Source of the DNA: Eukaryota sp. TZLM1-RC
Taxonomy: Eukaryota; Protista; Metamonada: BaSk clade
Direction: 5' to 3'
Assembly (NCBI GenBank): GCA_040285825.1
Contig: JAUPSS010000003.1
Span: 1,860,001-1,924,000, forward strand
DNA: 64,000 bases
Shown here: piece by piece, positions 19,381 to 56,613 of the stretch
Layout of the letters: the number at the start of each line of letters is the position of its first letter
Numbering within the stretch: position 1 is the first letter of the stretch
Program-made: the position numbers and the translations under genes
The notes under the pieces: model-generated
The model's database searches: none
Seen by the model: only the letters and a program-made list of their open reading frames with translations
What the model was told of the DNA's origin: nothing

Positions 19381-19439
19381 CGATTAATTTATAAATATTA
19401 CCATTGTTTCAAAAAAAACAAAAATATCAAGTACAATGT

Positions 19440-25295: not shown

Positions 25296-25534
25296 TTGTA
25301 AAATATATTTATCTTAAGTAGCGTCCATGTTTAATCTAAACCTGCAGTTTAACATAGCAGAAGATACAATGGTATACACCTAACTCTACTAAATGACACA
25401 GACATACCAGCAAAAGGATCCACGAATGATCAGCATGAATAATTAGTGGAGTGGTCGAACGTGGGCGAGGAGAAAATTCCTTTTCTTCCTCTACTTTCAG
25501 TATGACTCAAATCACACTCTAGCTAACAATAGAC

Positions 25535-27737: not shown

Positions 27738-28395
27738 TAATTGATGATGAGAGAATGAAAATGTATATAATTTTCTTTTACAATCTTCGTTTGGTTGCCT
27801 TAAGTAAACCTGGTGGTGGGGTTAGACCTATAGCTGTTGGTGAATCATTAATGAGATTGTTAGCAATTATTTGTTTTGATAGAATTAAGTCATCCACAAT
27901 TAATATCTTTCGTCCTTATCAGCTCGCAATTGGAATTCCTGATGGTACAACCTGTGCAGCTTTGTGTACAGATTTTCTTTTAATTAAAAAGGCGAAAATT
28001 ATTTATTGAATATTGATTTCAAAAATACTTTCAACTCGATTTTTCGCTCAAGCATTTTGCAAGAACTTGAACTTCATTTCCCCCCTCTCATGCCATATTT
28101 TAAATTGATGTATGGATCGCCTTCTAACATGATTTTCCATTCTGAGGACATTTCTTCATCAAGAGGTGTCAAGCAGGGAGATTCTTTGGGTCCATTTTTC
28201 TTTTGTTTAGCGCTTCAATCAGTTTTAGTAAAATTTAAGATGCATTTTCCTGACATTCATTTATGTGCTTATGCAGATGATTTGTCACTTATTGGTCATT
28301 TGTTCCTTTTACAGCAAGGATTTCAACATTTTGATATTCTGTCCCAACAAATTGGGTTAGATATTAATTTGCCCAAATGTTTCGTGATTGGTTAT

Positions 28396-28560
28396 TGATG
28401 ATCTGCGGGTGTTATGACGGGACATGACCTTATATGAAAAGTAGAGTAATTTATTACAAGGGAATGAGGATTTCCCTTAACTTAAGCGCATGGGCGCAAT
28501 AATACTATAACTATCAATAAACTATAAATAAACTATTATAAATATTATCCAAGGCTAACA
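28396..28560 (-). repeat. 3' LTR
   Basis: TGTTAG...ATCATCA on the minus strand; differs from the 5' LTR by one substitution and an 11-nt duplication; left edge ambiguous by 3 nt (28393). Confidence 0.93.
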
Positions 28561-34524: not shown

Positions 34525-37500
34525 TTAATTACTACTAGAAGGGCCCTTGCCTCTTCCTCTACGTCTACCTCTGCCTCTACTACTACTACTACTACCCCTA
34601 GCCAAATATGCTCGAACAGCATCTGGGTTGGCATCTCGCCATTGCTTGGATCGCTGGCAATCAGGGTCGGGACATTCGTTATTAGAGTGGCCTGGAATAC
34701 CACAGAATCTACAGAGACCAGCTTTATCTCTTTCTTTCTTAATTTGCGACTTGCTCCTTTTGGTAAGTTGAGCAGGGGCGACGCTGGAACCCGCAGACTT
34801 AAATTTGCCTATTCTTTTCTTGTCCTTTGAGTTTGCTCTAACATAGTGACCCATATGTTGTTGATAGCTGTCACTGATGTTGGCCCTTTGCTCGTCATAG
34901 GATCTTGCTGAACACCAACTCATGTATTCAGCAGCAAGGATGTCGACAAATTGTTGTAAAGTATGGTGTTGCCAAACATTGGGTGTGGACCATACTGTTC
35001 TCAGGTTGTCACTGATGGCCTGAATACCAACAGAATCGATCATATGGGTTGCAATTTCCCAGTTTTGAATGCGCTGTAGAAAATGTTGACCATACAAGGC
35101 ACGGTCGCTTGCCCTGACGTCAGAAATGGCAGTACTTCGTGAAACTGTTCTCATTAGCCTCACTGTGAAGTCGCCCCAGCGATTCCTAAAGTCCTGAATA
35201 TTCCAATTCATCTGGACTCTATATAACTGATTCCTCGCCGTTTCTAATGTACTATACTGGCTGAGGTGTAAAATTGATTCCCATATTTGCTCCTTATTAA
35301 TGTTGTCGATAGCTGAGATACTATCAGACATAGACGAAAACCTGCCTTGAGCTCTAAGAGCGGCCAAGCACTCTGGAGTAACACAGGAGGCAATTCTACG
35401 AGGGTCGACTTGAGCAGCAGCTCTGAATCGGTCCCACTCGTGGAGTGGGTTACCATATCTCTGATCGAGAGGGAGGTTCCGGTTTTCTCTGCTAATGGAT
35501 TGAGGAGTGGCAGGAGGACGAGAACGTTCCTCAAGTTGCCTTCTTAGTTCAGACACTTCTCTTGCTAGTCTGACTTGAATAGGATCAGATTCATTGATAT
35601 CTCTCTCTTCAATGGTCCTCTCAGTCCTAGCATACAGAATAAATCTGTCGATGAATTTCAAGATCCTTACTGGGTCAGAGATATCGTTGGCTTCCAGGGT
35701 GGGTTTTCTAGGACGACCACCTCTTTGTCTATCTCTATCTCTATCTTGTGAACTCGCCATAGCTTCCATCAGTAGAGTGTTGGAATACTGGGAAGCTATG
35801 GGAGTGTTAGAAGGAGTTGCTCCTAGGAGCCTAGGGTCCTGAGGAACCTGGGACGGAGTTGATGGATCCTGAGATTGGGCAATTACAGGTTGTTGCACTG
35901 ACTCAACAGTGTCAGTAGTTGCCATTGGCTCATCTTGTTGTTGGTCATCTTGAGGCTCAATGCTCAAAGATGAGAAAACTGTGTCTGTCTCAACTGGGTC
36001 AGGCTCAGAAGTTCTCAATTCTACTGGGTCATAATCGCTCGGATAGTAACTTTGCGCATTACCATCGATATTGACCCACAGAAGAGAACTAGAATTGGTG
36101 ACACCAATGTTCTCCTGTACATTCATCAAGGCGTCCCTTAGTGGCCTATTCCTTCTATGCTCCGGACCAAAATATGACGCGCAATGGTCTGTTCTGCGGT
36201 CTTGAAGGTACAATCTTTGGTAGTTTGTAGTGTAAGTGTACCACCATCCAGTCCTGAAGTCTCTATTGATGTAAATATCAAGAGAGGCATTGTATCCAGG
36301 GCTAAACCTGGGGAAAGGACATGGGTTAAATCGGTTGAGGAAGAGATTCAGCTCATCACCAGCGAAGATCCTCTGTACACCTTCACGAGGAGTTCTGAAC
36401 CCTCCAACAGTCTCCCGTTGAGGATAGTTTGGAGGAGGGTCACAACGAACCGTGAGATTGTCTACTTCCTCTGTTGGGAAGTAGGGACCTATTCTTCTGC
36501 GGATCCTAAAGCCGTGATCATTAACCACTTCTGGACCCCAAAATGGGGGTAAAGCAGCAATGAGTTCATTGGGAGGAATCGATGCAGGATCTCCTAGCAT
36601 TAACTCAATACCAGCATTGAGAACTAAAGTTTGAGCTTCAGTCCTCTGCTGAGTAGAGATGAAAGGAGAATCTGATTCCTGGGGCTGGCTTGGGGCTTGA
36701 TAGGTGTTAGGCTGTGCAGCGCTAAGCACCTGCCAAGCAGCAGGAACAGAAGAAACAACGTGACCTTGCTGAGGAGTCTGGCCAGAGGTTGGGGGAATAT
36801 GAATTATCCCTCTAGTAGGAACTCCCGAAGGAGGAACAGATGGAGTTGAATGGACTTCTGTAGGAGCTACCGTAGTAGGAGCAGAAGTATTAGGAGGACC
36901 TGCTACAGGAACTTCTCGAAAAGAAGTAGTAGGATTAGAGTTACCAGCAGGGACTGCAGGAGGAGCTGGTTGTTGCGGAGGACTGCTTTCCATAGGAACT
37001 TCCATAGAAGGAATGGAAGGAGCTTGTTGTCCTTCCCCAGGAGCTTCCCTAGAAGAAGTGGAAGGAGCAACAGGAGCGCAAACAATAGGTGGAAAGGGAG
37101 GCTCTACCCTCTTGAGCTTTAACAGCTCAGATATCTTGTTGCTAGCCGAGTCAGGGTCAGTCTGGTTGATGATATACTTCAGATATTCATCTAAAGTACA
37201 GAACTGTTCAGGACCTAAAAGGGAATCTTCAACCTCTCCTTCAGAACCAGGGGGAGGAGAAAGAGGTACAAAGTTTTCCACATTAGCGGGAGGAACAGGA
37301 AGACTGATAGGAACCACAGGAACGTCATCCGTAGATGGAGTGGAACCTTGACCCGAGGGTTGAGAGGAAGTATCACTTCTCTCGCCACCAGTGGGTTGTT
37401 CTGTTCCCAACAGAGGAGTTTGGGAGGAAGAACTTGAAACATTGGGTTGTGTAACAGAATCTCCGGAAGGAGGAATTAACACAGGAGGAGGAGAAGCATT

Positions 37501-37677
37501 GCTTCCCTCGGACCCAGTTGTCAAGGGTTGTTCTGGTCCCGACTGAGGAGTTCGGGAGGAAGAACTCGAAGAGTGAGACGTAGGAGGATCAGTCCTAACA
37601 GTCTCGGAGTTGTCATTGGAACCACCCAAAGGTGATCCAATACGTATTGATGATCTGCGGGTGTTATGACGGGACAT
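34525..37677 (-). CDS. gag: Gag, 1050 aa, Pro/Ser-rich N-terminus
   Basis: C-terminal CRFCGIPGHSNNEC knuckle and RG-rich tail; first ORF after the 5' LTR. Confidence 0.9.
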   Translation of the reverse strand: MSRHNTRRSSIRIGSPLGGSNDNSETVRTDPPTSHSSSSSSRTPQSGPEQPLTTGSEGSNASPPPVLIPPSGDSVTQPNVSSSSSQTPLLGTEQPTGGERSDTSSQPSGQGSTPSTDDVPVVPISLPVPPANVENFVPLSPPPGSEGEVEDSLLGPEQFCTLDEYLKYIINQTDPDSASNKISELLKLKRVEPPFPPIVCAPVAPSTSSREAPGEGQQAPSIPSMEVPMESSPPQQPAPPAVPAGNSNPTTSFREVPVAGPPNTSAPTTVAPTEVHSTPSVPPSGVPTRGIIHIPPTSGQTPQQGHVVSSVPAAWQVLSAAQPNTYQAPSQPQESDSPFISTQQRTEAQTLVLNAGIELMLGDPASIPPNELIAALPPFWGPEVVNDHGFRIRRRIGPYFPTEEVDNLTVRCDPPPNYPQRETVGGFRTPREGVQRIFAGDELNLFLNRFNPCPFPRFSPGYNASLDIYINRDFRTGWWYTYTTNYQRLYLQDRRTDHCASYFGPEHRRNRPLRDALMNVQENIGVTNSSSLLWVNIDGNAQSYYPSDYDPVELRTSEPDPVETDTVFSSLSIEPQDDQQQDEPMATTDTVESVQQPVIAQSQDPSTPSQVPQDPRLLGATPSNTPIASQYSNTLLMEAMASSQDRDRDRQRGGRPRKPTLEANDISDPVRILKFIDRFILYARTERTIEERDINESDPIQVRLAREVSELRRQLEERSRPPATPQSISRENRNLPLDQRYGNPLHEWDRFRAAAQVDPRRIASCVTPECLAALRAQGRFSSMSDSISAIDNINKEQIWESILHLSQYSTLETARNQLYRVQMNWNIQDFRNRWGDFTVRLMRTVSRSTAISDVRASDRALYGQHFLQRIQNWEIATHMIDSVGIQAISDNLRTVWSTPNVWQHHTLQQFVDILAAEYMSWCSARSYDEQRANISDSYQQHMGHYVRANSKDKKRIGKFKSAGSSVAPAQLTKRSKSQIKKERDKAGLCRFCGIPGHSNNECPDPDCQRSKQWRDANPDAVRAYLARGSSSSSRGRGRRRGRGKGPSSSN

Positions 37678-37801
37678 GACCTTATATGAAAAGTAGAGTA
37701 ATTTATTACCAGGGAATGAGGATTTCCCTTAACTTAAGCGCATGGGCGCAATAATACTATAACTATCAATAAACTATTATAAATATTATCCAAGGCTAAC
37801 A
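37648..37801 (-). repeat. 5' LTR
   Basis: Direct repeat of 28396-28560; contains the gag ATG at 37677. Confidence 0.93.
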
Positions 37802-38564: not shown

Positions 38565-38659
38565 GTGATTTCGGCCTTCTTGATTTGTTTACGGACGGAA
38601 GAACCGTAACGTACACCGTACTTACCGACAATACCGACCTTCTTAGTGTGTTTGTCCAT
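38565..38659 (-). pseudogene. Truncated eL43 duplicate (first ~32 codons)
   Basis: Matches 25535-25629 except A2D; keeps the upstream intron and promoter region. Confidence 0.9.
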
Positions 38660-38896
38660 GTCTATTGTTAGCTAGAGTGTGATTTGAGTCATACTGAAAG
38701 TAGAGGAAGAAGAGGGATTTTGTCCTCGCCCGCCTTGCCACTCCGCTGATTATTCATGCTGATCATTCGTGGATCCTTTTGCTGGTATTTCTGTGTCATT
38801 TAGTAGAGTTAGGTGTATACCATTGTATCTTCTTCTATGTTAAACTGCAGGTTTAGATTAAACATGGACGCTACTTAAGATAAATATATTTTACAA

Positions 38897-40972
38897 TCAA
38901 GAATCTATTGAATAACGTTGTCGCATTGTACTAAATTGCTCACGAAGTTTCTTCAAGTTCTCTTCAAAACTAGGTTTAGCACCTTCTGAGTTCAATGAAG
39001 GTCTCTCCTTTTGCAGGCTACTGTGTATGGTACTCAATCTATTAGTGAAACTGTTTGAATCTTCAGCTGTTGTGGGAGATGATTCTCTGAATTCATGGAC
39101 GGTTGAACTAAAAGGTTTACTTAAAGGAGACCTTGGTGAGGCAGGAACACTGTGAGCAAGTTCCAAATGACGTTTTCTCAGCGTCTTTAGCTCCTGCGTA
39201 AGAGCATCTCTTTCTGATTCCAAGGATTCCACTTTACTTTCTAAATCACGTACTTTTGCTTCGGCAGAGAAGGCCATATCACTATGCTTTTCAGACATAG
39301 TCTTGGCTTCTGCAAGTTCTTTTTTAAGCATTTGAACATGTGAAGAGAGGTTTGTCATTTCCTCTGTAGATGTACTCTCATGTCGTTGAATTGTTTTTTC
39401 AAGTGAAGAAATTCTACCTTGAGATCTCGATAAATCCATTTCTAATTCATTAATTTGTTCATTTTGTTGTTTTAATTTAGAATTTTGGTTTTCCAGCAAC
39501 TTTTCCATTTCAGAAATTTCTTTTTTCAAACTTTCATTCCTTTCTTTTTCTTTTAAAAGTTCATTTTCCATTTCATTTACAGATCCAATTTTAGATTCTT
39601 GCATAGTCAACGTTTTTTCTTGCGTTCTTAATTGGGATAGCAAAATCCTTGACTGTAAGGCAGCACTTGCTTCAGCTTCAACTGCCTGTTCTAGTTCTTC
39701 TTTCATTACTTTAATTTTATCCCGAGCTTCCTGTAAATTGGTTTCAGTAACTGATGACGTGGATCTTAAATCAGAAATGATTGATTCAGCCTCACGAAGT
39801 TGCTTACCAAGAGAGTTAATTTCAGAAGAATATTCATCGCAATCTTTAGATAAAGCCAAAACTTCTGAATTTAACGAATCCACCTTATTTTCCAGGTCAT
39901 TTATAACAATAACATTATCATCACGCTCAGAAGTCAACTCTATTATGAGCTCTTCCTTATCACCCAGCTTGTCAGTGAGCTCTTCTACACGTGCTTTTGA
40001 TTGATCTAGATGTGATTGGAGATCTTGATTTAATGAAAAAGCTCTACCAAGTTGTTTTTCGAGTGAAGATTTCTCGTTTTCTAACGTCGATTCTGACTGG
40101 GAAAGTTCATCAATTCTTGATTGATTGGATTGATTGAGAGTTTTTAACTGTTTGATTTCTCCATCTTTGGCCCTTTTAACTTGCTCCAGCTCAGTAATTA
40201 GCTTTTGTTTAGAATCTTCAAGAATTCCAACATTTGATCGTAATTCATCTATTTCATTAGTCAATTGTGAATTATTTTGCTTTAACAAATTAATTTCTTC
40301 ATCTTTTTCCATTGATACTTGTTCTAATTCTTCAGTCAAAAAGTTCTTTTCTTCTTCACTTTTCCTTGCTTGATTGAGAGCATCTTCCTGGGCTTGTTGG
40401 CTTTCCCTAGCATAATCCAATAGAGCAGCCTTTTCTTCTTCGAGAGTGGATATCCTAGTTTCTAATGAATCCATTTTGGATTCATAACTGTCAATTTTAC
40501 CTTCAATTGATTTGGTATCGAGTGCATTTTTAAGGACATCGATATAGGCTTTAGACTCTTGGTTAGAGGTTTCTTCCCGCCGTAACGCTTCACGCAGTCT
40601 TCTGATTTCTGATTGAAGCTCAGAAATTTGTCTATTTTGAGCTGATGACGTGGGTGTGGAGACGGTAGAGCGACGTTGATTTTCACGAACTTGTCTTCGT
40701 AGGTTGGTGATTTCTTGAGTAAGTTCCTTTGACTCGGAACGAAGTCGTTCTAGTTGAGAAGTTTGGTCAGCAATTGTTTGAGCCTGTCGTTGAACCTTAG
40801 CCCCAAGTTTTTTGTTGTAATCATTGGCGATTTTGGCTTCCTGAATGAGAGAAGTATCAGGCTCTTCTACGTTGGAGGACATCATGGAAGGATGAAGGGG
40901 AGGTTTTGAAGATACATAGGATGAAGGTGGGGAATCTGGTGGGCATTCATATCCATCAAAGGTGAAACTCAT
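38897..40972 (-). CDS. Long coiled-coil protein, copy 2 (691 aa from ATG 40972)
   Basis: Only a few substitutions versus 23217..25295 after the first ~11 residues. Confidence 0.85.
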   Translation of the reverse strand: MSFTFDGYECPPDSPPSSYVSSKPPLHPSMMSSNVEEPDTSLIQEAKIANDYNKKLGAKVQRQAQTIADQTSQLERLRSESKELTQEITNLRRQVRENQRRSTVSTPTSSAQNRQISELQSEIRRLREALRREETSNQESKAYIDVLKNALDTKSIEGKIDSYESKMDSLETRISTLEEEKAALLDYARESQQAQEDALNQARKSEEEKNFLTEELEQVSMEKDEEINLLKQNNSQLTNEIDELRSNVGILEDSKQKLITELEQVKRAKDGEIKQLKTLNQSNQSRIDELSQSESTLENEKSSLEKQLGRAFSLNQDLQSHLDQSKARVEELTDKLGDKEELIIELTSERDDNVIVINDLENKVDSLNSEVLALSKDCDEYSSEINSLGKQLREAESIISDLRSTSSVTETNLQEARDKIKVMKEELEQAVEAEASAALQSRILLSQLRTQEKTLTMQESKIGSVNEMENELLKEKERNESLKKEISEMEKLLENQNSKLKQQNEQINELEMDLSRSQGRISSLEKTIQRHESTSTEEMTNLSSHVQMLKKELAEAKTMSEKHSDMAFSAEAKVRDLESKVESLESERDALTQELKTLRKRHLELAHSVPASPRSPLSKPFSSTVHEFRESSPTTAEDSNSFTNRLSTIHSSLQKERPSLNSEGAKPSFEENLKKLREQFSTMRQRYSIDS

Positions 40973-41819: not shown

Positions 41820-42140
41820 TATTTATTGAATTTCCACACTTAACAAAATAAATTCATAACTAATGAGCGAAATTCTTTTAACCAAGACTTTCTCTGCAGA
41901 AGCTTGATCTACTTGCTGCCTCGCTACCGCTTCTCTAATTCGCTTGAAAAACCGAGGTAATCTATTAATAATGGCAAATTGAATTCGAGAGCGCCATACA
42001 AAAATATCAAATCTTTTCATTGTTTTTTCTCGAATGACTTTTTGACAATCATTCAACAAAATTCCTGCTTCTACTGATAGTCCTTCGTTTATTGAAAATG
42101 GGAAAGCAATAAAAACCAGTGGTGTATCTCTATCAGCAGG
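41820..42140 (-). mobile_element. Diverged family A non-LTR 3' fragment
   Basis: LVFIAFPFSIN..WRSRIQFAIINRLPRF plus the family tail. Confidence 0.8.
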
Positions 42141-43245: not shown

Positions 43246-46200
43246 CTACTTGGTAACTACAAACCAATTACGTTCTCCTAAACCATCATATACACACTTA
43301 TACAAACAGGTTGTTGTATATATTAAAAAAGGATTATTAGATGACCATTCCATAGATGCAGTCCAGACAACCAACCTTTCGTTACTAAGGACAACTCCAA
43401 GTGAAGGCTCAATCACACACCGCTGCAATGATATTGGTTGGACTGTCGTTGTGTTCCATGTAATGAACAAACGCAAATTTTCCAACCATTCGGGAAGACA
43501 TATGTGTCTACAGTATTGAACAAAAGCAAGAAAAGACTTGACAGTATCTCTAGAATCAATATCAAGACCAATTGAGGCTAGAATTTTACAACCACACAGC
43601 ACCGCATAGTCCAATTCAGTTAATCTACAGTGTTGGTTCACTGTTGGAACATCCACTGCAAAGAACACTTTCCTTCTTGTACAATGTTCTGAACTTACCA
43701 AATAAGACATTAATTCGGAAAACAAACTGGTTTGAATAGCATCAATGAGTAACACAGCTTCAACAAGGAACGCAAGTGAGTGGATTGTATTCGGTTCCGC
43801 AAGATCTTCATCAAAATCAAAAAATCCACAGGAAGCTAATCGGGATAAATAAGGACGACCGTTGTTGCTATCCACGTCCAATTGGATCAACGACGAAATG
43901 CTTACTTGATCTACTAGGCGTGCAACATCTGAACGACAATCATTCATTATTTCACTCTTGGTCTGATGATTAGGATTGTCTCGAAAATGTTCAAATAGAG
44001 AAATAATGATTTTGAAAATACCAGATAGAATGAAACTGTTATTAAAATCATCTTTCTTTTGCTCAGAGAAGTTTTCACTGCCATACATAAAACTATCCAA
44101 ACCTTCAAGATATAACTGAAAACTGAAAACTAAGCGGTCAACCTTGCTGCTTCCGCTCACCAATCCAGAGTAGCGGTACAAATCTGCTAACGAAACAACA
44201 AACTTTGCATCACTGCCACTGCAGTTCCTGTAGCCAGAATGAACAATCTCAACCATATTGAAAACTTCCTCACAATTTCTGTGATTGATTCTTACTCTTT
44301 TTAAAAGCCTCGTCATGGAATGAAAGACACCAATTCTTTGTCTCACAAATTGTTCCCCTTTTGCAATATCTTCAATCAACTGCCAATGGCTCAAAAGCTT
44401 AGTGGCACCATCACTGTCACCTAGGGTGTCTAGTGTCTGAGATGGTGAACATTCTCTATTGAAAACATTCAATTCTTCAACGATGTGACCTTCTAAACTT
44501 AAAATTGGTACAAATAATTTGGTAACAATTAGGTGATGACATTTGTGCTCAGATAGCATATCGCTAATGGCACTAAAAAAGCAAATAGTTCCCTTTAGAT
44601 AATAAGAAATAATGAACTTAGCAACAGAAAGGTTGATGTGGTACTTCGATTCTGAGCGGCTAACAAAACGATCTGATATGGTTGTTTCAAACATTAAAAA
44701 TTGACTTAAGTTAGCATCAACACTACTATTGGAAATTGATTCATAAACCCGTTGTAGTGCCAAAACAAACAAATAATTCTTTTCATTAGGCAAACACTTC
44801 TTCAAAACAGGCATTAACACAGACTTCGCTTTGGAAAATCCACCCGCAAACAACGAAAGACCGAGATACAAGAAATCAGGTGACTCAAAACAGCTCTCGG
44901 TTAAATTTTTGTACCTTAATTCTGGAATACCCAGTATTGTGAGTAGATCTTTGAGTTTTGTGTAGAAATTGGTGTCAGAAAAAACATTAGCACTGTGAGG
45001 AGATACATACTGCAATCCATTTCTTCCACCAGCAATTTTCGTTTGCTGCGTGACAAGATAAATCATAGCCAGTTTCACACCTGAATTTTCCTTAGAAAAA
45101 TTTTTGACAATGAAGTTTAATCGATGTTTCAACCGTGATTGAGTACAGTAGACCACTAGATTGTTGGTCCTATATAATTGCACAACAGATGGTAAATAGC
45201 TGAGAAGTTCATCTGCACTGCTACCCTCATAGACCAGACACTTAGACTGGGTGATACGAGCAATATCACAAAGTGCCAAGAGGATAGATGTATGTCCTCC
45301 ACAACAGTAATCTTGTTTCACGATTTCAATCACTGAACAACTGGTCATAGAGTTGATTTTTTCAAGCAGCTTAGATTGTAGAGAAGAAACACTTTGGTGA
45401 CTTGGAATCAATGTGTCTTTTGTGAACAGTTGTAAGGAAGGCTTGGATCCTTTCAAGAACGATCTTAAACTGGCATTTCGTTCATCTTCTGTAAAAGCTT
45501 CATCAGCTACAGGAAAAACAGTCAAGTTGACTGGTAAGCGCATGTGCAGAAACCTGTGACTATATCGCAGACCGCACTCAGGGACCTGAGTGACATACGG
45601 TAGAAGAACAGCGGATGGAGACAAAAAATGTTTAAGGTTGTCCAACAACTCCGACTCATCATTCGGAAGAACAAAGTCGTCAAGAATTGGTAATAAATGT
45701 TCCGCTCTATTGCGATCATCTGCTTCAATAAGACAGTGAGCTAACAATTTGGGTAATTGAGTTGAGGGAAATTCAAAGATGTAACTATTCCTAACACTTA
45801 GCAAGGAATCGTAATTCAGAGAAGAGTAAGAAATTGTCTTCAGAGTACTAGATCTGAGAACATCAGGGGATAAGGGATCGTCAGCATAGTCAATGAAGGC
45901 TCGGAAGGGGAGACCTAATAGATTGTGCAATAATGTAGGTTTCCATGAAGGAACGTCACCAAAAATAGTACTAGAATTAAAAAGCAATATCATAGTGCTG
46001 AATGATTCCCCCCAGCACTTATTGAATCTAGCAGAATAAGTTTGAAACCAAGAAGATGAAGGGGGAACCATGGACAATTTACGGACAGATGGACCACATC
46101 TCAGGTGAATACCTCGATATTTAGAGTGTACAGCATTAGCTGTGATTTCCAGAGGTGATTGATTGAGACGTATCTCCATCAGAGCAACGGTATTTTCCCC

Positions 46201-46629
46201 TTCAACTGGGTTAAGACAAAGAGGATGTAAGTGAAACTGCACAGGGACATTAAAACAATTGAAGAAATCATTCGTGGCTTCAGTATAGTCCTTGTCGAAT
46301 TCTAGATCACTGACAAGGTCTTGATCCAGTTGATAAGCGAGATGATCTGAAAGACAACGGTTTGGACTGAACTCATCACGAGAAGGTTCTTTCCAATTCA
46401 AAATCATGTAAACTGAATGAAAGCGAGGATTTTTGAGCGAACCATACATAGTGCCAGAGTTGTGTAAACCACACACTGCGTGAAGAAAGCGGTCATAGTG
46501 ATCGCCCGTGAGTCTTGGATCCCACGGAAAGTAGTTCTTGAACTCTAGATCGTGACTCTCAAAGACAGAACCCTTAAAATGAGTGAGATAGAATCGAATT
46601 GCCTTCTCTACTTCTCTCTTGGGGGCCAT
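43246..46629 (-). CDS. SAMD9-like protein (AlbA_2, SIR2-like, degenerate P-loop NTPase, helical), copy 1
   Basis: ESHDLEFK..AVCGLHNSG (AlbA_2), ILLFN..FRAFIDY, FLKGSKPSLQLF, IEIVKQDYCCGGHTSIL, EKNYLFVLAL in SAMD9 order; no SAM domain. Confidence 0.7.
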   Translation of the reverse strand: MAPKREVEKAIRFYLTHFKGSVFESHDLEFKNYFPWDPRLTGDHYDRFLHAVCGLHNSGTMYGSLKNPRFHSVYMILNWKEPSRDEFSPNRCLSDHLAYQLDQDLVSDLEFDKDYTEATNDFFNCFNVPVQFHLHPLCLNPVEGENTVALMEIRLNQSPLEITANAVHSKYRGIHLRCGPSVRKLSMVPPSSSWFQTYSARFNKCWGESFSTMILLFNSSTIFGDVPSWKPTLLHNLLGLPFRAFIDYADDPLSPDVLRSSTLKTISYSSLNYDSLLSVRNSYIFEFPSTQLPKLLAHCLIEADDRNRAEHLLPILDDFVLPNDESELLDNLKHFLSPSAVLLPYVTQVPECGLRYSHRFLHMRLPVNLTVFPVADEAFTEDERNASLRSFLKGSKPSLQLFTKDTLIPSHQSVSSLQSKLLEKINSMTSCSVIEIVKQDYCCGGHTSILLALCDIARITQSKCLVYEGSSADELLSYLPSVVQLYRTNNLVVYCTQSRLKHRLNFIVKNFSKENSGVKLAMIYLVTQQTKIAGGRNGLQYVSPHSANVFSDTNFYTKLKDLLTILGIPELRYKNLTESCFESPDFLYLGLSLFAGGFSKAKSVLMPVLKKCLPNEKNYLFVLALQRVYESISNSSVDANLSQFLMFETTISDRFVSRSESKYHINLSVAKFIISYYLKGTICFFSAISDMLSEHKCHHLIVTKLFVPILSLEGHIVEELNVFNRECSPSQTLDTLGDSDGATKLLSHWQLIEDIAKGEQFVRQRIGVFHSMTRLLKRVRINHRNCEEVFNMVEIVHSGYRNCSGSDAKFVVSLADLYRYSGLVSGSSKVDRLVFSFQLYLEGLDSFMYGSENFSEQKKDDFNNSFILSGIFKIIISLFEHFRDNPNHQTKSEIMNDCRSDVARLVDQVSISSLIQLDVDSNNGRPYLSRLASCGFFDFDEDLAEPNTIHSLAFLVEAVLLIDAIQTSLFSELMSYLVSSEHCTRRKVFFAVDVPTVNQHCRLTELDYAVLCGCKILASIGLDIDSRDTVKSFLAFVQYCRHICLPEWLENLRLFITWNTTTVQPISLQRCVIEPSLGVVLSNERLVVWTASMEWSSNNPFLIYTTTCLYKCVYDGLGERNWFVVTK

Positions 46630-48109
46630 TACGGTGAATAAATGGTCGCTTCAGATTAGGATTTTCGAAGGGGTTCTTGAATCAGTGTTCAGAACTTTTC
46701 CAAACGTTTTTCTTTTGATGAAATTGTTTCTTCAATTCAACAATGGTGATATAATACAATACTGCTTTTAAGGAGACTTTTGGATGAAGCATAGAAGAAT
46801 AGAGCGATGTCTGAAGATATCAAAAGCATTGATTGCCAGCTATTGCATGGTTCACGGTTTATTCACACCGACAAAGAAACCAGTTGCTATACCGTACAAA
46901 AGGTCAAATCAAACCAATACCACTGCGGCATTTTCTATACATTCACAAGATCAGATAATTGATGTATAGTGACTTGTAAAAGTCGTCCTGATCTGCTATT
47001 TTCCCCTGTTGAAAGTCGTATCACGATTTTCGAAGTATCCTCTTACATATACTTGCATTCAGTTGAGAACATGTCATTAACACAGCGACAATTCTCCTAG
47101 GTCAATTGTTTCCTGTTCGAGAACCTCATTCACAAACAAGCTACAGCTTCACTTTGTGACATTACACTGAAAGTTTAGTTTCAACCATACTTTTGAATTC
47201 CATTATTCCTGGAATTATTGCAGTGGAATTCTTTGAGTATTTGGAATTCTGGGATTTTACGGTCTGGAATACCAAAAAGAAGTTTGAAATTAAAAATATG
47301 GTTGCAACTGTTTTCCCCTTGATTATCCTCCTTGGAGCCTGAAACTTCTCAACGACCCGTTGGATCACTTTTTTCTAAATCAGGAACTTTGCAAAACAAT
47401 ATGTCAATAGTCGTGAAAGCTTGTACTTTCATATAAAGTACGTTTTATAAATTAAAAAAAACACTTTTCTCATTGACAATCAACCTGAAATACTGAGTTT
47501 GCAAAACCTTTAAGACCCCATTTATGGTCTGTTTCTATCATTCTATTTCATCAGATAACCACACAGGAGATTCTCCAGCAGAACAAATGCGGTATGAGCA
47601 TTGTTTGTTTATAACCAAAATTCATGGTTTTGGTATTTTGCATTTTCACAACATATGTGTGATCTGTAAACATCTGCGGTAAATTATCAATGTCATCAAT
47701 GATATAGATTCCAATTGGGAGGTGAATGTGTTATCAAAAAAGATTGAGATTAGTTCTGTGATATTTCGTCTTCCTCAAGTTTGTTTTTATTAGAATTCAC
47801 TGGAAATTTCTATAATAAAGATGAAGCTGTTTCACCAATTGATTGTAAATTTGAACAAATGCAGGTTTCTATTAACTTAAATTGAATAGGATTATTTGAA
47901 TATAATTGAATTTTAATAGAAGTAGTTCACCTGGAATTTTCGTACATATTCTTATTTCACCAACAAACCCTTCATTATAAGACGCACATAGTTTTGAGGG
48001 ACTCTTGTGACATACAGTCAAAATTCTGATGACTGATTCTCTCACACCATTTTCCAATAACAAATATCATAATAAGATGCTCAAAACAGTTCCTCCTCGT
48101 GTATATTTA

Positions 48110-48900
48110 ACTTCCTCAAATTTATGGTCTTCTTTTAGATGAACCCACATTTTCTTGTACAATGCCATGTTTCATTGGGCCGATAACGTGCCTCAAAATT
48201 GTAGTTGTAAATGTGGATCAAAGATCTCCCCAAATCAGTTATTCAATTGTAAACATTTTATTTCTTTCCAATCAAAAGTCCCTGATGAAGTTAGGGATCA
48301 TCTCTATTGTGAGTCAAAGTCACTCAAAATTGTTTCCTATTTGAAAGCTTTACTCTCTTGTTTGGTTGATGAAAATACTTTGAATTCTTGTGGTCGAAAT
48401 AGAGGTGATTTATTGCTTGGAGGCCTTCAAGGAACGACTATGATTACTAATGTGAGACCAACTGATTTGTGGAATATATCTTTTATACCGTTGACTCAGT
48501 CAAAACACAAGAATCCGCTTTCTGTAGCCAAAAACATTAAAATTGATAAATAAATATAAAGCAAAGTTGGTTTCCTTGCGTGCTGAATTCCACACTCATT
48601 ATGTCCTTTATTCATTTGCTTTTTCTTTGTATGGCACGCTTGGACCACTTGCTTCATCTTTCTAGAATGATTTTGTTGAATTTCTAAAACAACATACAGG
48701 ATGAATTTTTGACAAAATGTTTTGGTATAACGGAATTGTTCTTTTAATTTTTAAAAATTATGTCCCATTATTATCTTCTGCTTTATTATTTCTTGGTTGA
48801 ATTTATGATGGTAAAATTTCCAGTCAATTGTTTTGGCTGATTTAAGATGAATGAAGATTTAGAGTTTTAAGATTGTTGTTAAGTTTCTCGTTGAAATAAA
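48110..48900 (+). mobile_element. Degenerate family B non-LTR 3' fragment
   Basis: CKCGSKISPN, RNRGDL; matches 3830-4620. Confidence 0.85.
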
Positions 48901-48944
48901 TTACATCGAATTACAAATTAACTGGTTCACGACAAAGAAGAAAA

Positions 48945-49115
48945 TGTATGTGAAATTGAACACGCACATTAAAAAAATTGAAGAAGTCACTTACAAGGTC
49001 TTGATCTAGTCGGTAAATGAGATTATCTGAAAGGCAACGGTTTGGACTGGCCTCATCACAAGAAGGTTGCTTCCACTTCAAAACCATGTATACTGAATGA
49101 AGCTGAGGATTTTGG
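48945..49115 (-). pseudogene. Third, diverged fragment of the SAMD9-like gene (AlbA_2 region)
   Basis: NPQLHSVYMVLKWKQPS..SPNRCLSD..LDQDLVSD..FFNVRVQFH aligns to ~aa 66-135 of the full copies. Confidence 0.85.
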
Positions 49116-49289
49116 CATCGCAATATTGATGTCAGTGATGGAAGCATAAGTAAATAATGGAGATTGACCAGAATACATGCAGAGAGTCGATGTTAATGGT
49201 CGAAAGAAAAAGGTTTTTAGGAGAAAATATTCTCAACAACTCAGGTCCCTCTACATTGCTGTAAATAGGACATTTATTTCATTGAAGTG

Positions 49290-49743
49290 GTGCCTTGATC
49301 CTGAAGGTGAGAGGAAATATCACATCTCTCGCCAACAGAAGGTAGTTCTGTTCCCAACTGAGGAGTTTGGTAGAAAGAACCTGTTCAACTGGAAAGCGTG
49401 ACGGTATCACCAGAAGCAGGCGTCAACGTAGGAGGAGGAGAAGCATTGCTTCCCCCGGACCCAGTTGTTACGGGTTGTTCTGGTCCCGACTGAGGAGTTC
49501 AGGAGGAAGAACTCGAATTTTGAGACGGAGGAGGATCAGTCCTACCAGTCTCAAAAATATTGTCTGATCCACCCGAAGAGATCCTATACGTATTGATGAT
49601 CTGTGGGGGGTTAAGACTGGAATGTACCTATAAGATATGTAATGAGATTTATTACGAGGAGAAAAGGATTTCCCTCAACTTGAGCGCATTTGTACAATAA
49701 ACTATAAATAAACTATTAATACAAATATTATCCAAGGGTAACA
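49290..49743 (-). mobile_element. Diverged 5' LTR plus gag start of the same gypsy family
   Basis: Aligns to ~37345-37801, including ATACGTATTGATGATCTG and the terminal CCAAGG-TAACA. Confidence 0.85.
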
Positions 49744-50035
49744 CTAACTTTCTTCGCAAAAGAAGTGTCTAGTGCTACTCACCCATCAGCAACATTTGGT
49801 AACATTCGGACATTCCCTCTGTGGTCTTGACTGTTGATTTGACAAAATACACAACTTACTTCACGCTTAGGCTTACACTTCTATATACACAATTCATCCC
49901 ACAATCATTTTGTTTGGTCATTTCAAAAATCTTTATCTTTAAAAAACCTGCTCAGCTGTCAGATGCTTCAAGACCCACTCCTAGTTCCACGGGAATCTAC
50001 TAATATGGGTGTGCTAATACAAGTCATGAACAAAG

Positions 50036-53000
50036 CTACTTGGTAACTACAAACCAATTACGTTCTCCTACACCATCATATACACACTTATACAAACAGG
50101 TTGTTGTATATATTAAAAAAGGATTATTAGATGACCATTCCATAGATGGAGTCCAGACAACCAACCTTTCGTTACTAAGAACAACTCCAAGTGAAGGCTC
50201 AACCACACACCGCTGCAATGATTTTGGTTGGAATGTCGTTGTGTTCCACGTAATGAACAAACGCAAATTTTCCAACCATTCGGGAAGACATATGTGTCTA
50301 CAGTATTGAACATAAGCAAGAAAAGACTTGACAGTATCTCTAGAATCAATATCAAGACCAATTGAGGCTAGAATTTTACAACCACACAGCACCGCATAGT
50401 CCAATTCAGTTAATCTACAGTGTTGGTTCACCGTTGGAACATCTACTGCAAAGAACACTTTCCTTCTTGTACAATGTTCTGAACTTACTAAATAAGACAT
50501 TAATTCGGAAAACAAACTGGTTTGAATAGCATCAATAAGTAACACAGCTTCAACAAGGAACGCAAGTGAGTGGATTGTATTCGGTTCCACAAGATCTTCA
50601 TCAAAATCAAAAAATCCACAAGAAGCTAATCGGGGTAAATAAGGACGACCGTTGTTGCTATCCACGTCCAATTGGATCAACGACGAAATGCTTACTTGAT
50701 CTACTAGGCGTGCAACATCTGAACGACAAACATTCATTATTTCGCTCTTGGTCTGATAATTAGGATTGTCTCGAAAATGTTCAAATAGAGAAATAATGAT
50801 TTTGAAAATACCAGATAGAATGAAACTGTTATCAAAATCATCTTTCTTTTGCTCAGAGAAGTTTTCACTGTCATACATGGAACTATCCAAACCTTCAAGA
50901 TATAACTGAAAACTGAAAAGTAAGCGGTCAACCTTGTTGCTTCCGCTCACCAATCCAGAGTAGCGGTACAAATCTGCTAACGAAACAACAAACTTTGCAT
51001 CATTGCCACTGCAGTTCCTGTAGCCAGAATGAACAATCTCAACCATATTGAAAACTTCCTCACAATTTCTATGATTGATTCTTACTCTTTTTAAAAGCCT
51101 CGTCATGGAATGAAAGACACCAATTCTTTGTCTCACAAATTGTTCCCCTTTTGCAATATCTTCAATCAACTGCCAATGGCTCAAAAGCTTAGTGGCACCA
51201 TCACTGTCACCTAGGCTGTCTAGTGTCTGAGGTGGTGAACATTCTCTATTGAAAACATTCAATTCTTCAACGATGTGACCTTCTAAACTTAAAATTGGTA
51301 CAAATAATTTGGTAACAATTAGGTGATGACATTTGTGCTCAGATAGCATATCGCTAATGGCACTAAAAAAGCAAATAGTTCCCTTTAGATAATAAGAAAT
51401 AATGAACTTAGCAACAGAAAGGTTGATGTGGTACTTCGATTCTGAGCGGCTAACAAAACGATCTGATATCGTTGTTTCAAACATTAAAAATTTACTTAAT
51501 TCAGCATCAACACTACTATTGGAAATTGATTCATAAACCCGTTGTAGTGCCAAGACAAACAAATAATTCTTTTCATTAGGCAAACACTTCTTCAACACAG
51601 GCATTAACACAGACTTCGCTTTGGAAAATCCACCCGCAAACAACGAAAGACCGAGATACAAAAAATCAGGTGATTCAAAACAGTTCTCGGTTAAATTTTT
51701 GTACCTTAATTCTGGAATACCCAGTATTGTGAGTAGATCTTTGAGTTTTTTGTAGAAATTGGTGTCAGAAAAAACATTAGCACTGTGAGGAGATACATAC
51801 TGCAATCCATTTTTTCCACCAGCAATTTTCGTTTGCTGCGTTACAAGATAAATCATAGCCAGTTTCACACCTGAATTTTCCTTAGAAAAATTTTTGACAA
51901 TGAAGTTTAATCGATGTTTCAACCGTGATTGAGTACAGTAGACCACTAGATTGTTGGTCTTATATAATTGCACAACAGATGGTAAATAGCTGAGAAGTTC
52001 ATCTTCACTGCTACCCTCATAGACCAGACACTTAGACTGGGTGATACGAGCAATATCACGAAGTGCCAAGAGGATAGATGTATGTCCTCCACAACAGTAA
52101 TCTTGTTTCACGATTTCAATCACTGAACAACTGGTCATAGAGTTGATTTTTTCAAGCAGCTTAGATTGTAGAGAAGAAACACTTTGGTGACTTGGAATCA
52201 ATGTGTCTTTTGTGAACAGTTGTAAGGAAGGCTTGGATCCTTTCAAGAACGATCTTAAACTGACATTTCGTTCATCTTCTGTAAAAGCTTCATCAGCTAC
52301 AGGAAAAACAGTCAAGTTGGCTGGTAAGCGCAAGCGCAGAAACCTGTGACTATATCGCAGACCGCACTCAGGGACCTGAGTGACATACGGTAGAAGAACA
52401 GCGGATGGAGACAAAAAATGTTTAAGGTTGTCCAACAACTCCGACTCATCATTCGGAAGAACAAAGTCGTCAAGAATTGGTAATAAATGTTCCGCTCTAT
52501 TGCGATCATCTGCTTCAATAAGACAGTGAGCTAACAATTTGGGTAATTGAGTTGAGGGAAATTCAAAGATGTAACTATTCCTAACACTTAGCAAGGAATC
52601 GTAATTCAGAGAAGAGTAAGAAATTGTCTTCAGAGTACTAGATCTGAGAACATCAGGGGATAAGGGATCGTCAGCATAGTCAATGAAGGGGAGACCTAAT
52701 AGATTGTGCAATAATGTAGGTTTCCATGAAGGAACGTCACCAAAAATTGTACTAGAATTAAAAAGCAATATCATAGTGCTGAATGATTCCCCCCAGCACT
52801 TATTGAATCTAGCAGAATAAGTTTGAAACCAAGAAGAATTAGGGGGAACCATGGACAATTTACGGACAGATGGACCACATCTCAGGTGAATACCTCGATA
52901 TTTAGAGTGTACAGCATTAGCTGTGATTTCCAGAGGTGATTGATTGAGACGTATCTCCATCAGAGCAACGGTATTTTCCCCTTCAACTGGGTTAAGACAA

Positions 53001-53410
53001 AGAGGATGTAAGTGAAACTGCACAGGGACATTAAAACAATTGAAGAAATCATTCGTGGCTTCAGTATAGTCCTTGTCGAATTCTAGATCACTGACAAGGT
53101 CTTGATCCAGTTGATAAGTGAGATGGTCTGAAAGGCAACGGTTTGGACTAAACTCATCACGAGAAGGTTCTTTCCAATTCAAAACCATGTAAACTGAATG
53201 AAACTGAGGATTTTTGAGCGAACCATACATAGTGCCAGAGTTGTGTAAACCACACACTGCGTGAAGAAAGCGGTCATAGTGATCGCCCGTGAGTCTTGGA
53301 TCCCATGGAAAGTAGTTCTTGAACTCTAGATCGTGATTCTCAAAGACAGAACCCTTAAAATGAGTGAGATAGAATCGAATTGCCTTCTCTACTTCTCTCT
53401 TGGGGGCCAT
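50036..53410 (-). CDS. SAMD9-like protein, copy 2 (1124 aa)
   Basis: About 35 aa substitutions and a 3-aa deletion versus copy 1; duplicated block ~49994-53524 vs ~43204-46744. Confidence 0.7.
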   Translation of the reverse strand: MAPKREVEKAIRFYLTHFKGSVFENHDLEFKNYFPWDPRLTGDHYDRFLHAVCGLHNSGTMYGSLKNPQFHSVYMVLNWKEPSRDEFSPNRCLSDHLTYQLDQDLVSDLEFDKDYTEATNDFFNCFNVPVQFHLHPLCLNPVEGENTVALMEIRLNQSPLEITANAVHSKYRGIHLRCGPSVRKLSMVPPNSSWFQTYSARFNKCWGESFSTMILLFNSSTIFGDVPSWKPTLLHNLLGLPFIDYADDPLSPDVLRSSTLKTISYSSLNYDSLLSVRNSYIFEFPSTQLPKLLAHCLIEADDRNRAEHLLPILDDFVLPNDESELLDNLKHFLSPSAVLLPYVTQVPECGLRYSHRFLRLRLPANLTVFPVADEAFTEDERNVSLRSFLKGSKPSLQLFTKDTLIPSHQSVSSLQSKLLEKINSMTSCSVIEIVKQDYCCGGHTSILLALRDIARITQSKCLVYEGSSEDELLSYLPSVVQLYKTNNLVVYCTQSRLKHRLNFIVKNFSKENSGVKLAMIYLVTQQTKIAGGKNGLQYVSPHSANVFSDTNFYKKLKDLLTILGIPELRYKNLTENCFESPDFLYLGLSLFAGGFSKAKSVLMPVLKKCLPNEKNYLFVLALQRVYESISNSSVDAELSKFLMFETTISDRFVSRSESKYHINLSVAKFIISYYLKGTICFFSAISDMLSEHKCHHLIVTKLFVPILSLEGHIVEELNVFNRECSPPQTLDSLGDSDGATKLLSHWQLIEDIAKGEQFVRQRIGVFHSMTRLLKRVRINHRNCEEVFNMVEIVHSGYRNCSGNDAKFVVSLADLYRYSGLVSGSNKVDRLLFSFQLYLEGLDSSMYDSENFSEQKKDDFDNSFILSGIFKIIISLFEHFRDNPNYQTKSEIMNVCRSDVARLVDQVSISSLIQLDVDSNNGRPYLPRLASCGFFDFDEDLVEPNTIHSLAFLVEAVLLIDAIQTSLFSELMSYLVSSEHCTRRKVFFAVDVPTVNQHCRLTELDYAVLCGCKILASIGLDIDSRDTVKSFLAYVQYCRHICLPEWLENLRLFITWNTTTFQPKSLQRCVVEPSLGVVLSNERLVVWTPSMEWSSNNPFLIYTTTCLYKCVYDGVGERNWFVVTK

Positions 53411-53529
53411 TACGGTGAATAAATGGTCGCTTCAGATTGGGATTTTTGAAGGGATTCCCGAATCAGTGTTCAGAATTTTTCCAAATGTTTTTCTTTTGAT
53501 GAAATTGTTTCTTCAATTCAACAAAATTC

Positions 53530-54010
53530 TGTGATTGGATTGATAATTCTGAAGCTATTGTTGACTTTGTCTCATGTAATGTTGCAAAAGATACTTTGGT
53601 TCACAGAAGAAAACTAAATCCTGTGAGTGCTCTTGATTTTAAAGCAAAAGAAAAACATAGAAAATATGATAAAAATGTTGAAGAGGCTAATGCTGATAGA
53701 AATACACAGCTGGTTTTTATTGCTTTCCCATTTTTGATAAATGGAAGATTATCAGATGAAGCAGAAACCTTTTTGAATGACTTCCAAAAAAATGGTTCAA
53801 GAAAAAACAATGAAAAGTTTTGATATCTTTTTGAAAACGCTCTCGAATTCAATTTGCCATAATTAAAAGATTACCTCGGTTTTTCAATCGAACTAGAGAA
53901 GCTTTAGCTAGACAGCAAGCAGATCAAAATTTTGTAGAGGAAATCTTGGTTCAATGAATTTCGTCTCATTGGTTGTGAGTTTATTTTGTTAAGTGTGTAA
54001 GTTCAATAAA
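53530..54010 (+). mobile_element. Family A non-LTR 3' fragment
   Basis: CDWIDNSEAIVDF..EEILVQ with frameshifts. Confidence 0.85.
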
Positions 54011-54350
54011 AGTAATGTACTTACCACACAATTCTTTGGTAATTTCACCATTATTTCTAAAAAACGAACCCAAATGATGAATAACATCAGTTAAATGTAA
54101 CTTGGCTTGAATTTCAATACTATCAGCTGATGTTGAAACTGGAAAATTTGAAAGTAAAACACATTTAAGAAAGTGAAGTTGAAGGCCAAATTTGTTGAAT
54201 AATTCTTTAAAACATACAGCTGCTTCTCTGACAATCGTTAAGTCACCTATAAGAACAACATCATCCATATAAGCAATCATTTTTAAAGAAGGAAACATTG
54301 CTTCAATTTGGAATAAAATTGGATGAAGGCCAGACAGAACAAAAGAGGTT
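54011..54350 (-). mobile_element. Non-LTR RT fragment
   Basis: LKMIAYMDDVVLIG..GLQLHFLKC..HLGS. Confidence 0.75.
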
Positions 54351-54809
54351 CTGAGGGATCTCCTTACGAGTATTACGAGCATTGCGGATGCAGAAATCAA
54401 GTGCATTTGATTTTAAATTTTACACAGATATTAATGCAATGTTGATTAGAATTTATATCGACAAAGACATTTCTCATTATAGTTTAAGTCTTAGGCGGGT
54501 TCCAGACAGCGCTCCTCTCCCTAATTGATAAAAGCAAACATTTTCCAAACAAATGTCTAATCGTAGATAAAAACTTCACCTAAATTTCGTTATTTAACTC
54601 ACAAATATTTTGTGTCCAAAACATCTATGTTCAAGGTGACATGAAATAGATAATATTATAAAGAGTTAGAGTGGCCAAAAAGCCTGATACAAAAATTTTA
54701 TTGCTATACTGTAAAAATCAGGTAAGATAAGTGTAAGCAAAACGCTAGTCAATGAAGTTGAAAGGGAAACTAATGGGTAAAAGAAACTGCACAAGACACT
54801 AAAACGACT

Positions 54810-55497: not shown

Positions 55498-55986
55498 TCA
55501 GAAGAACTCCATATAGACATCAGATTCAGTGTTGTGCATTTCCTCAAAGCAAGGAATAACGGTTTGCAAGAACCCATTCTCAGTTTCAACATATTTGTAA
55601 ATTGCACCCTGTTGAAACTTACTACCCAATGAAACCATTATATCATCTACATCATGTGTAAATGCAACACAAAAACCCTCTTCCTTCCAACCTCCTCTAG
55701 GATCTTCGGAATAAGCAAAATTTATAGATGCTGGAGGAGGATTAGTCAAAGATGCTATGTGATCGCGTAAACGAATATTGCGCTCAATATTCTGATCCTT
55801 AGGAGCCTCCTGACCCATTGGATTCCAAGCAGTTATACCATACCAAACACGTGCATTGTTTTTCTTTAAACAATTGGGTGGGAGTGATATTTGAGAAGTA
55901 TTTGATGGGCGTAATTTGACTTCTTCAGAATTGACAAAGATGTGAGTTACTGCAGCTGCCCAAAGGTCACGAAGATCTTCAGACAT
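55498..55986 (-). CDS. DUF3293-like protein
   Basis: ITAWNPMG..N..RN..L, WKEEGF, LGSKFQQGAIY motifs. Confidence 0.75.
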   Translation of the reverse strand: MSEDLRDLWAAAVTHIFVNSEEVKLRPSNTSQISLPPNCLKKNNARVWYGITAWNPMGQEAPKDQNIERNIRLRDHIASLTNPPPASINFAYSEDPRGGWKEEGFCVAFTHDVDDIMVSLGSKFQQGAIYKYVETENGFLQTVIPCFEEMHNTESDVYMEFF

Positions 55987-56022: not shown

Positions 56023-56613
56023 ATGTCTGAACAACAGAGTGAAGCTCCTCCTATGGAGTTTCACGAAATTGATAACCTTCTAAAAGCATCAGGGGTTACA
56101 GAACGTGATGACTCAGCTGTTATGGCTTTACTTGAATATTCTTACAGATACCTAAACGAGATTTATACTGATGCTGCCAACTGGGCACATCACGCAGGAA
56201 GACAACAGGTCACTGTTGAAGATATACAGCTTTCAACGAGGCTGAAGTCTACTTTTGAAACGAGACAACCCCCTAAACTTAAACAACTACTATCAATTGC
56301 ATCACGGGTTAATTCTGAATCAATACCTGCTATTTCAAATAAACCCGGAATGCCAAAACCTCCAGATAAGTTTTGTACAACAGCCCCCAATTACACTGTC
56401 TCAGTGAAAAAGGAGGAAAATCCTATATCTCATGCTGCTCCGATGCCTGAACGAATGGTGTCAGAAGCTGCCGAAGATGAAGCACTTCCTATGGAACTTC
56501 CACATGAATTGGAGACTGGAAGTGTACAGCAACAGGAAGCTATGGAACCTTCTACAACAGAATATCCAGACGATTCATTTCTTCCGATGTCTATGGACTT
56601 TGACTTTGAATAA
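56023..56613 (+). CDS. TAF9: TFIID subunit TAF9
   Basis: Histone fold LLEYSYRY..DA..AHHAG..VEDIQL, then PP..L..IA..VN..IP and PPDKFCTTAPNY. Confidence 0.9.
   Translation: MSEQQSEAPPMEFHEIDNLLKASGVTERDDSAVMALLEYSYRYLNEIYTDAANWAHHAGRQQVTVEDIQLSTRLKSTFETRQPPKLKQLLSIASRVNSESIPAISNKPGMPKPPDKFCTTAPNYTVSVKKEENPISHAAPMPERMVSEAAEDEALPMELPHELETGSVQQQEAMEPSTTEYPDDSFLPMSMDFDFE

Follow-up and report, generated by a model that had tools for sequence, protein, structure and literature searches.

SAMD9 and SAMD9L (SAMD9/9L) of animals are virus-activated anticodon nucleases that shut down translation. According to a 2025 structural survey across the tree of life, analogues of these proteins occur in metazoa, bacteria and archaea, whereas plants, fungi, algae and protozoa yielded none; its authors argued for convergence between animals and bacteria (PMC12680541). 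The locus studied here raises the question whether a sensor-nuclease of this type also exists in a unicellular eukaryote. It lies in a stretch of 64,000 nucleotides, referred to below as the window, from contig JAUPSS010000003.1 (assembly GCA_040285825.1, positions 1,860,001 to 1,924,000) of strain TZLM1-RC, and comprises two nearly identical genes, copies A and B, which a previous reading of the sequence without database searches (the sequence-only reading) had taken for a duplicated SAMD9-like antiviral gene of a unicellular eukaryote. The host is indeed a flagellate: TZLM1-RC is Skoliomonas litria (Metamonada), which, like Skoliomonas sp. TZLM3-RCL, is a free-living, bacterivorous, anaerobic metamonad from soda lakes (PMC11603281). 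The genes represent a STAND family in a protist that is SAMD9/Avs-like in predicted fold and, by analogy with known systems, probably has the role of an immune sensor-nuclease.

The two intact open reading frames (ORFs) of about 1125 amino acids (aa) and the third fragment, described from the sequence alone, were all confirmed (Table 1). Copies A and B are 97% identical at the protein level and their ORFs are uninterrupted, that is, intron-free. At the DNA level the homology forms a sharply bounded unit of 3540 bp with 97.8% identity, which, together with a decayed third copy, bears out the claimed duplication. The segments that had been likened to SAMD9 are present in copy A (ILLFN at 214, LPFRAFIDY at 240, FLKGSKPSLQLF at 391, KQDYCCGGHT at 438 and EKNYLFVLAL at 616); in copy B the second of these motifs lacks the three residues RAF.

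An exhaustive HMMER pass through 1.84 billion representative proteins gave five matches, all from Skoliomonas: copy B, P0002, P0003, P0004 and the cluster P0005/P0007/P0008. P0002 has 1105 aa and is 32% identical over aa 1-823 (E 4e-73), and P0007 (868 aa) lacks the N-terminal ~340 residues. The remaining members are fragments, namely P0003 (121 aa, encoded at another site of the 3.72-Mb contig that carries copies A and B), P0004 (153 aa, from strain TZLM3-RCL), P0005 and P0008. P0003 shares 81% identity with copy B in the stretch aa 61-144, and the ~38 residues at its end correspond to the other strand of this gene region, which suggests from the sequence an inverted rearrangement or an annotation running through one.

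The likeness to SAMD9 emerged from predicted structure. A template-free AlphaFold (AF2) model of aa 340-1127, built on an alignment of Skoliomonas sequences only, was compared with 350,542 PDB chains, a comparison of the kind that the sequence-only reading had proposed as a check. Human SAMD9 came out on top and Avs5 next. Ranks 1 to 6 were all cryo-electron microscopy (cryo-EM) structures of human SAMD9 released in February 2026 (9zjs, 9zjr, 9zjv, 9zjw and 9zjz), with E values from 1.5e-7 to 4e-5, a probability of 1.00, 790-935 aligned columns and 12-13% identity. Rank 7 was the SIR2-STAND protein EfAvs5 (9jap, E 1.3e-3). Apaf-1 (E 0.024), AVAST5 (0.027) and Avs4 (0.045) appeared at lower ranks, among generic TPR/HAT repeat proteins, and AAA+ ATPases matched the confidently modelled domain at aa 409-529. 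In the model a strand runs into the loop K-Q-D-Y-C-C-G-G-H-T and is followed by a helix, as in P-loop NTPases, so that the atypical Walker A motif proposed from the sequence coincides exactly with a P-loop alpha/beta domain. This domain and the matches to SAMD9, Avs5, Apaf-1, Avs4 and AAA+ proteins indicate, at the level of the model, the presence of a STAND-type P-loop NTPase module. The paired helices and the terminal domain of six predicted strands (predicted local distance difference test, pLDDT, 50-80) are laid out like a TPR array followed by a putative OB fold. Against viral structures the same model returned only noise (best E 7.7e-4, probability 0.41). A second model, of aa 1-345, was based on four sequences and failed because the alignment was so shallow (mean pLDDT 32.7); its fold search matched nothing (best E 0.36). 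Since the viral search gave noise and the bad N-terminal model attracted nothing, the match to SAMD9 is not a generic artefact of poor models.

The N-terminal part is, judging from sequence comparisons, quite probably an AlbA_2 domain. Two motifs had been read there. The first, E24-x4-E29-F-K, is present as described; in the second, five residues rather than four separate A51 from N57-S-G. The composite motif occurred in none of 20,000 protein shuffles, and in a six-frame translation of the window it was found in these two genes only. Both the acidic motif and N57-S-G are conserved in the N-terminus of P0002, which is 36% identical. Moreover, aa 24-176 of P0002 align to positions 1-114 of the 118 of PF04326 (SLFN_AlbA_2; E 0.13), the sole Pfam family reported for this protein, below threshold; this alignment is not independent of the motifs, and it shows similarity across the whole length of the domain. 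The resemblance to Schlafen/AlbA_2 proteins thus consists of an acidic pair five residues apart, an aromatic residue and a lysine directly thereafter and an N-S-G turn ~28 residues further on, all conserved between the paralogues. The active site of AlbA_2 is a cluster of three to four acidic residues (PMC12680541). In the Skoliomonas proteins E24 and E29 are conserved, and E81, D85 and E86 follow after the next predicted strand (D residues in P0002); their equivalence to the active-site cluster is putative. For aa 191-340, the position of the SIR2-like domain proposed from the sequence, no Pfam or PDB match was obtained, and the fold search with the low-quality N-terminal model that covers this region (pLDDT 33) was blank.

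Placed beside known systems, the family can be described, on the evidence of the model, as SAMD9-like in architecture and fold. The order of domains in SAMD9 is SAM, tRNase (AlbA_2), SIR2-like, Delta, NOD, TPR1, TPR2 and OB (PMC13600222, PMC5445408), its cryo-EM chains beginning at SIR2. In the Skoliomonas protein the NTPase, the helical repeats and the small C-terminal beta domain, which lie within the region whose best structural match is SAMD9/9L, follow each other in the same order (NOD-TPR-OB), and the conserved segment aa 341-408 sits where SAMD9 has its Delta domain (PMC13600222). In this segment a block F-L-x-G-x-K-P is invariant across all four lineages of the family. A Walker A motif without lysine, an N-terminal candidate effector of AlbA_2 type and the occurrence of tandem paralogues are further common traits. 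In contrast to SAMD9, the protein has neither a SAM domain nor a long disordered N-terminus and measures 1127 aa against 1589. The proteins are 12-13% identical in the structural alignment without any similarity at the level of hidden Markov models (HMMs), and the host is a metamonad protist. The absence of the SAM domain, which had been claimed from the sequence, follows from the fact that the ORF and the 32%-identical P0002 start at the same methionine; in addition, a stop codon lies eight codons upstream of the ATG of copy A.

The bacterial Avs9 and Avs5/Avs6 proteins are likewise SAM-less and share the layout of effector, STAND module and repeats; Avs5, AVAST5 and Avs4 were among the structural matches, and Avs9, compared by its description in the literature, has an AlbA_2 effector whose acidic active-site residues show the spacing seen in E24/E29 (PMC12680541). 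Unlike these systems, the Skoliomonas family matched no PADLOC model, had no relative in 185,579 prokaryotic genomes searched by pattern scan and shows the codon use of its eukaryotic host. Its context is a eukaryotic chromosome (Hobbit, TAF9, a formate/nitrite transporter (FNT), retroelements) and not a prokaryotic defence island. Apaf-1 and the NLRs have in common with it a P-loop nucleotide-binding domain, helical domains and a repeat sensor. The match to Apaf-1 was, however, far weaker than that to SAMD9, and the family has no CARD, PYD, TIR, WD40 or LRR domain and no NB-ARC or NACHT match in Pfam. Between copy A and P0002, conservation falls from 37-41% identity at the effector end to 22% in aa 530-1068, the most diverged part, whose first ~190 residues lie where the helical and winged-helix parts would be expected. 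Such a gradient from a conserved effector to diverged repeats fits what is known of NLR and Avs sensors.

By sequence the family is an orphan. Neither the whole proteins, nor four pieces of them, nor any family member had a significant match in Pfam, PADLOC, PHROGs or NCBIfam, and PADLOC returned nothing beyond noise. Sequence searches of the PDB with the whole proteins, pieces and paralogues were without significant match, and profiles of the family (A1, A2 and A4) run against the PDB, SAMD9 chains included, were blank. Word-indexed protein searches with copy A, the family profile and P0002 gave no lead, pattern scans of metagenomes and of the prokaryotic genomes mentioned above found no relative, and tblastn of aa 1-200 against plasmids found nothing.

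Several results weigh against a kinship with SAMD9 and an immune role. The model of aa 340-1127 is of moderate confidence (mean pLDDT 55.7, predicted template modelling score 0.40). Its template modelling (TM) scores to SAMD9 are low (0.17-0.18), so that the match is one of 3Di/sequence alignment and not of rigid superposition, although a low TM-score is expected for a multi-domain model of this quality. Furthermore, the six top matches are one protein and count as a single observation. A phmmer search of 1.84e9 representative proteins and the PDB found no match to SAMD9, and no HMM or profile search tied the family to SAMD9, Avs, SIR2 or, above threshold, AlbA_2. The gathering threshold of PF04326 was not reached by any family member tested: P0002 scored 13.2 bits with a cut-off of 25.3, and copies A and B had no AlbA_2 match in Pfam at all. 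To our knowledge, no virus of Skoliomonas has been described. Finally, the nucleotide-binding site deviates from that of SAMD9. In SAMD9 the Walker A motif reads GGT/S instead of GKT/S, and a conserved upstream histidine takes the place of the lysine (PMC5445408, PMC13600222). This signature is not found here: all four lineages have G444-x-[H/R]446-T447, in which the lysine is replaced in its own position, and the residue five before is D, E, E or H, with no conserved upstream histidine. Copies A and B also have no acidic residue on the expected Walker B strand (LVVYCT, aa 491-496), where P0007 has one. Nucleotide hydrolysis is doubtful because of the missing lysine and, in A and B, the missing Walker B acid. 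As the Walker A signature and sequence homology both fail, we have not filed the family as a member of SAMD9. The proposed SAMD9-likeness therefore stands for fold match and layout and falls for sequence similarity and Walker A signature; of the proposed AlbA_2 domain, the conserved motif pair and the whole-domain alignment hold, the latter in P0002 only and short of the Pfam threshold.

These points lend themselves to another explanation, unlikely in our view, in which the proteins are generic STAND (NLR-like) NTPases with helical repeats that resemble SAMD9 only through features shared by the superfamily, carry a new N-terminal domain and serve in signalling or scaffolding and not in immunity. 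Architectures joining STAND and TPR are common, the TM-scores to SAMD9 are low, AlbA_2 stays below threshold and appears in one paralogue only, the Walker A signature of SAMD9 (PMC5445408) is absent and no defence-family HMM matched. On the other hand, among the STAND-TPR proteins of the PDB SAMD9 led in E by about four orders of magnitude, with Avs5 next; the beta domain after the repeats corresponds to the unusual OB end of SAMD9; and the N-terminal motifs follow the AlbA_2 profile collinearly over its whole length. We consider it fairly probable that copies A and B are recent tandem paralogues of a Skoliomonas-specific STAND (NLR-like) NTPase family that parallels SAMD9/9L and Avs9/Avs5 and acts as a sensor-nuclease. 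Its architecture would comprise a conserved N-terminal effector, probably an AlbA_2/Schlafen-type RNase, an unassigned middle region, a conserved linker, an oligomerisation module of P-loop type whose Walker A is deviant, fast-diverging helical repeats and a small beta domain.

The copies themselves bear on how the family is maintained. Between A and B we counted ~22 synonymous and ~38 non-synonymous substitutions and one in-frame insertion/deletion; the ratio of non-synonymous to synonymous rates (dN/dS) of 0.46 is, with counts this small, compatible with purifying selection. The 3.25-kb spacer between the copies contains transposon fragments in addition to the decayed third-copy relic. An assembly artefact was rejected, the copies differing by 2.2% and one insertion/deletion and being separated by unique sequence. 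The codon use of A and B correlates with that of neighbouring host genes at r 0.84-0.85 and with that of the adjacent long terminal repeat (LTR) element at r 0.40-0.53; a recent foreign origin was rejected on account of this host-like codon use.

It could also be argued that the family is carried and multiplied by mobile elements, as a transposon passenger or a selfish gene, and owes its copy number to transposition and not to selection on the host. The duplicated unit has sharp ends and hardly exceeds the gene in length, retroelement debris surrounds it, a dispersed repeat adjoins copy B, and the S. litria assembly (31.9 Mb in 16 contigs, 35.8% GC) consists of repeats to 55.4% (PMC11316075). 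We nevertheless hold this to be improbable. At the ends of units A and B we saw neither inverted nor direct terminal repeats, nor a target-site duplication or a poly(A) tract, and a retrocopy or transposon cargo was rejected on these grounds; the protein has no transposase or reverse transcriptase domain, codon use is host-like and unlike that of the neighbouring LTR element, and paralogues that have diverged to 23-32% identity keep their full length. That the genes are non-functional remnants, open only because the duplication is young, is very improbable: a dN/dS from just 60 differences, a relic, several fragments and degenerate Walker motifs would agree with it, but two 3.4-kb ORFs are still open at 2.2% divergence, their sole insertion/deletion is in frame, and the 32%-identical P0002 retains the same length, start and motifs.

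If the sensor-nuclease interpretation is followed, a mechanism may be proposed that is modelled throughout on SAMD9 and Avs biology. At first the protein would be closed and nucleotide-bound, with the C-terminal repeats and beta domain keeping it inactive. This block would be released once the C-terminal part recognises a molecule foreign to the cell, of viral or possibly retroelement origin. Assembly of the NTPase modules would then cluster the N-terminal nucleases, whose cutting of tRNA or another RNA would stop translation in the infected cell, a role parallel to that of SAMD9/9L. The cluster, with two intact copies and a relic here and diverged or truncated paralogues elsewhere, would correspond to the birth-and-death turnover usual for immune genes.

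Tentatively, we suggest that sensor-nucleases of the SAMD9/Avs9 type, so far recorded from animals and prokaryotes, may here have their first representative in another lineage, as an innate-immunity family that is active and duplicating in a free-living metamonad. In that case the architecture would be far older in eukaryotes than the animal-only record implies, or was acquired from bacterial prey by a bacterivorous protist, or was assembled independently a third time, and the family would be a third, very distant data point on inheritance, transfer or convergence. It would also offer a eukaryotic version that is compact, has neither a SAM domain nor introns and shows a differently repaired P-loop, to be set beside the new SAMD9 structures, and would join a very short list of candidate cell-autonomous immune sensors in metamonads, a group in which viruses and defences are almost unexplored. 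If the assignment holds, it is a strongly divergent SAMD9-like variant in a new eukaryotic lineage.

Table 1. Copies, duplicated units and predicted domains (window coordinates; domains and residue numbers refer to copy A)
Feature	Position	Strand	Remarks
Copy A	43246..46629	(-)	Intact ORF, 1127 aa; coordinates include the stop codon
Copy B	50036..53410	(-)	Intact ORF, 1124 aa; shorter by an in-frame deletion of three residues when compared with A and P0002
Duplicated DNA unit A	43204..46743		Gene plus flanks of 114 bp (upstream) and 42 bp (downstream); sharply bounded at either end
Duplicated DNA unit B	49994..53524		97.8% identical to unit A; upstream end adjoins dispersed repeat 53526-54010
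Third-copy relic	48920..49114	(-)	78 residues, corresponding to aa 66-142 at 60% identity; internal deletion and stop
Candidate AlbA_2/Schlafen-like effector, aa 24-190	46060..46560	(-)	E24, E29, K31, N57-S-G; 37% identity to P0002; sub-threshold in Pfam
aa 191-340, position of the SIR2-like domain of SAMD9	45610..46059	(-)	No domain match; absent from P0007
aa 341-408	45406..45609	(-)	Most conserved segment, 41% identity to P0002; directly before the NTPase
Predicted P-loop-type alpha/beta NTPase, aa 409-529	45043..45405	(-)	pLDDT 71-81; strand, loop and helix followed by an alternation of strands and helices
Deviant Walker A, aa 438-447	45289-45318	(-)	Invariant G444 and T447; His/Arg at 446
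Predicted helical region, aa 530-1068	43426..45042	(-)	First ~190 residues poorly modelled, then paired-helix array (TPR-like, pLDDT 50-80)
Predicted C-terminal all-beta domain, aa 1069-1127	43249..43425	(-)	Six predicted strands, pLDDT 64-74

The gene cluster sits in a repeat-rich chromosomal region, with ordinary eukaryotic genes as neighbours (Hobbit/FMP27, the FNT, TAF9, an Rce1-like protease and coiled-coil proteins) and retroelement debris interspersed. Just upstream of the cluster lies a divergent pair of host genes encoding a DUF3293 protein (55498-55986, minus strand) and a TAF9-like histone-fold protein (56023-56613, plus strand). An inverted 2.4-kb duplication (23222-25629 and 38565-40970, 98.5% identity) carries a gene for a coiled-coil protein (692 and 706 aa), and its arms bracket the FNT gene and the LTR element. 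Scans of the window for tRNA genes and Rfam families gave nothing informative.

The LTR element, of Ty3/gypsy type, extends from 28393 to 37801 on the minus strand. Its LTRs of ~168 bp are 93% alike, its GC content is 44% against ~36% in the surroundings, and Pfam recognised a zinc knuckle, an aspartyl protease, a reverse transcriptase, RNase H and an integrase. The gag-pol region is split over seven ORFs by six interruptions (one in-frame stop and five frame changes), one or two of the frame changes possibly being the natural gag/pol boundary; RNase H-like matches fall in two separate ORFs. A related LTR-like piece is found in the spacer between copies A and B (49283-49743).

Two further repeat families were noted, both with ORFs that have no Pfam match. 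A dispersed repeat of ~700 bp is present in full at 8780-9461, 18688-19389 and 20408-21108 (90-98% identity) and in part at 41820-42138 and 53526-54010; one partial copy adjoins the upstream end of copy B and the other, inverted, lies ~1 kb past copy A on its downstream side. The ORF at 53981-54406, which adjoins this repeat, has a weak reverse transcriptase match. The second family (3821-5436, 19459-21825 and 48075-48901; 75-80% identity) has a copy in the A-B spacer beside the third-copy relic. Near the edge of the window, an ORF on the minus strand (62295-63146), flanked by unassigned ORFs, contains an RVT_1 reverse transcriptase domain (E 4e-21) and is probably part of another retroelement.

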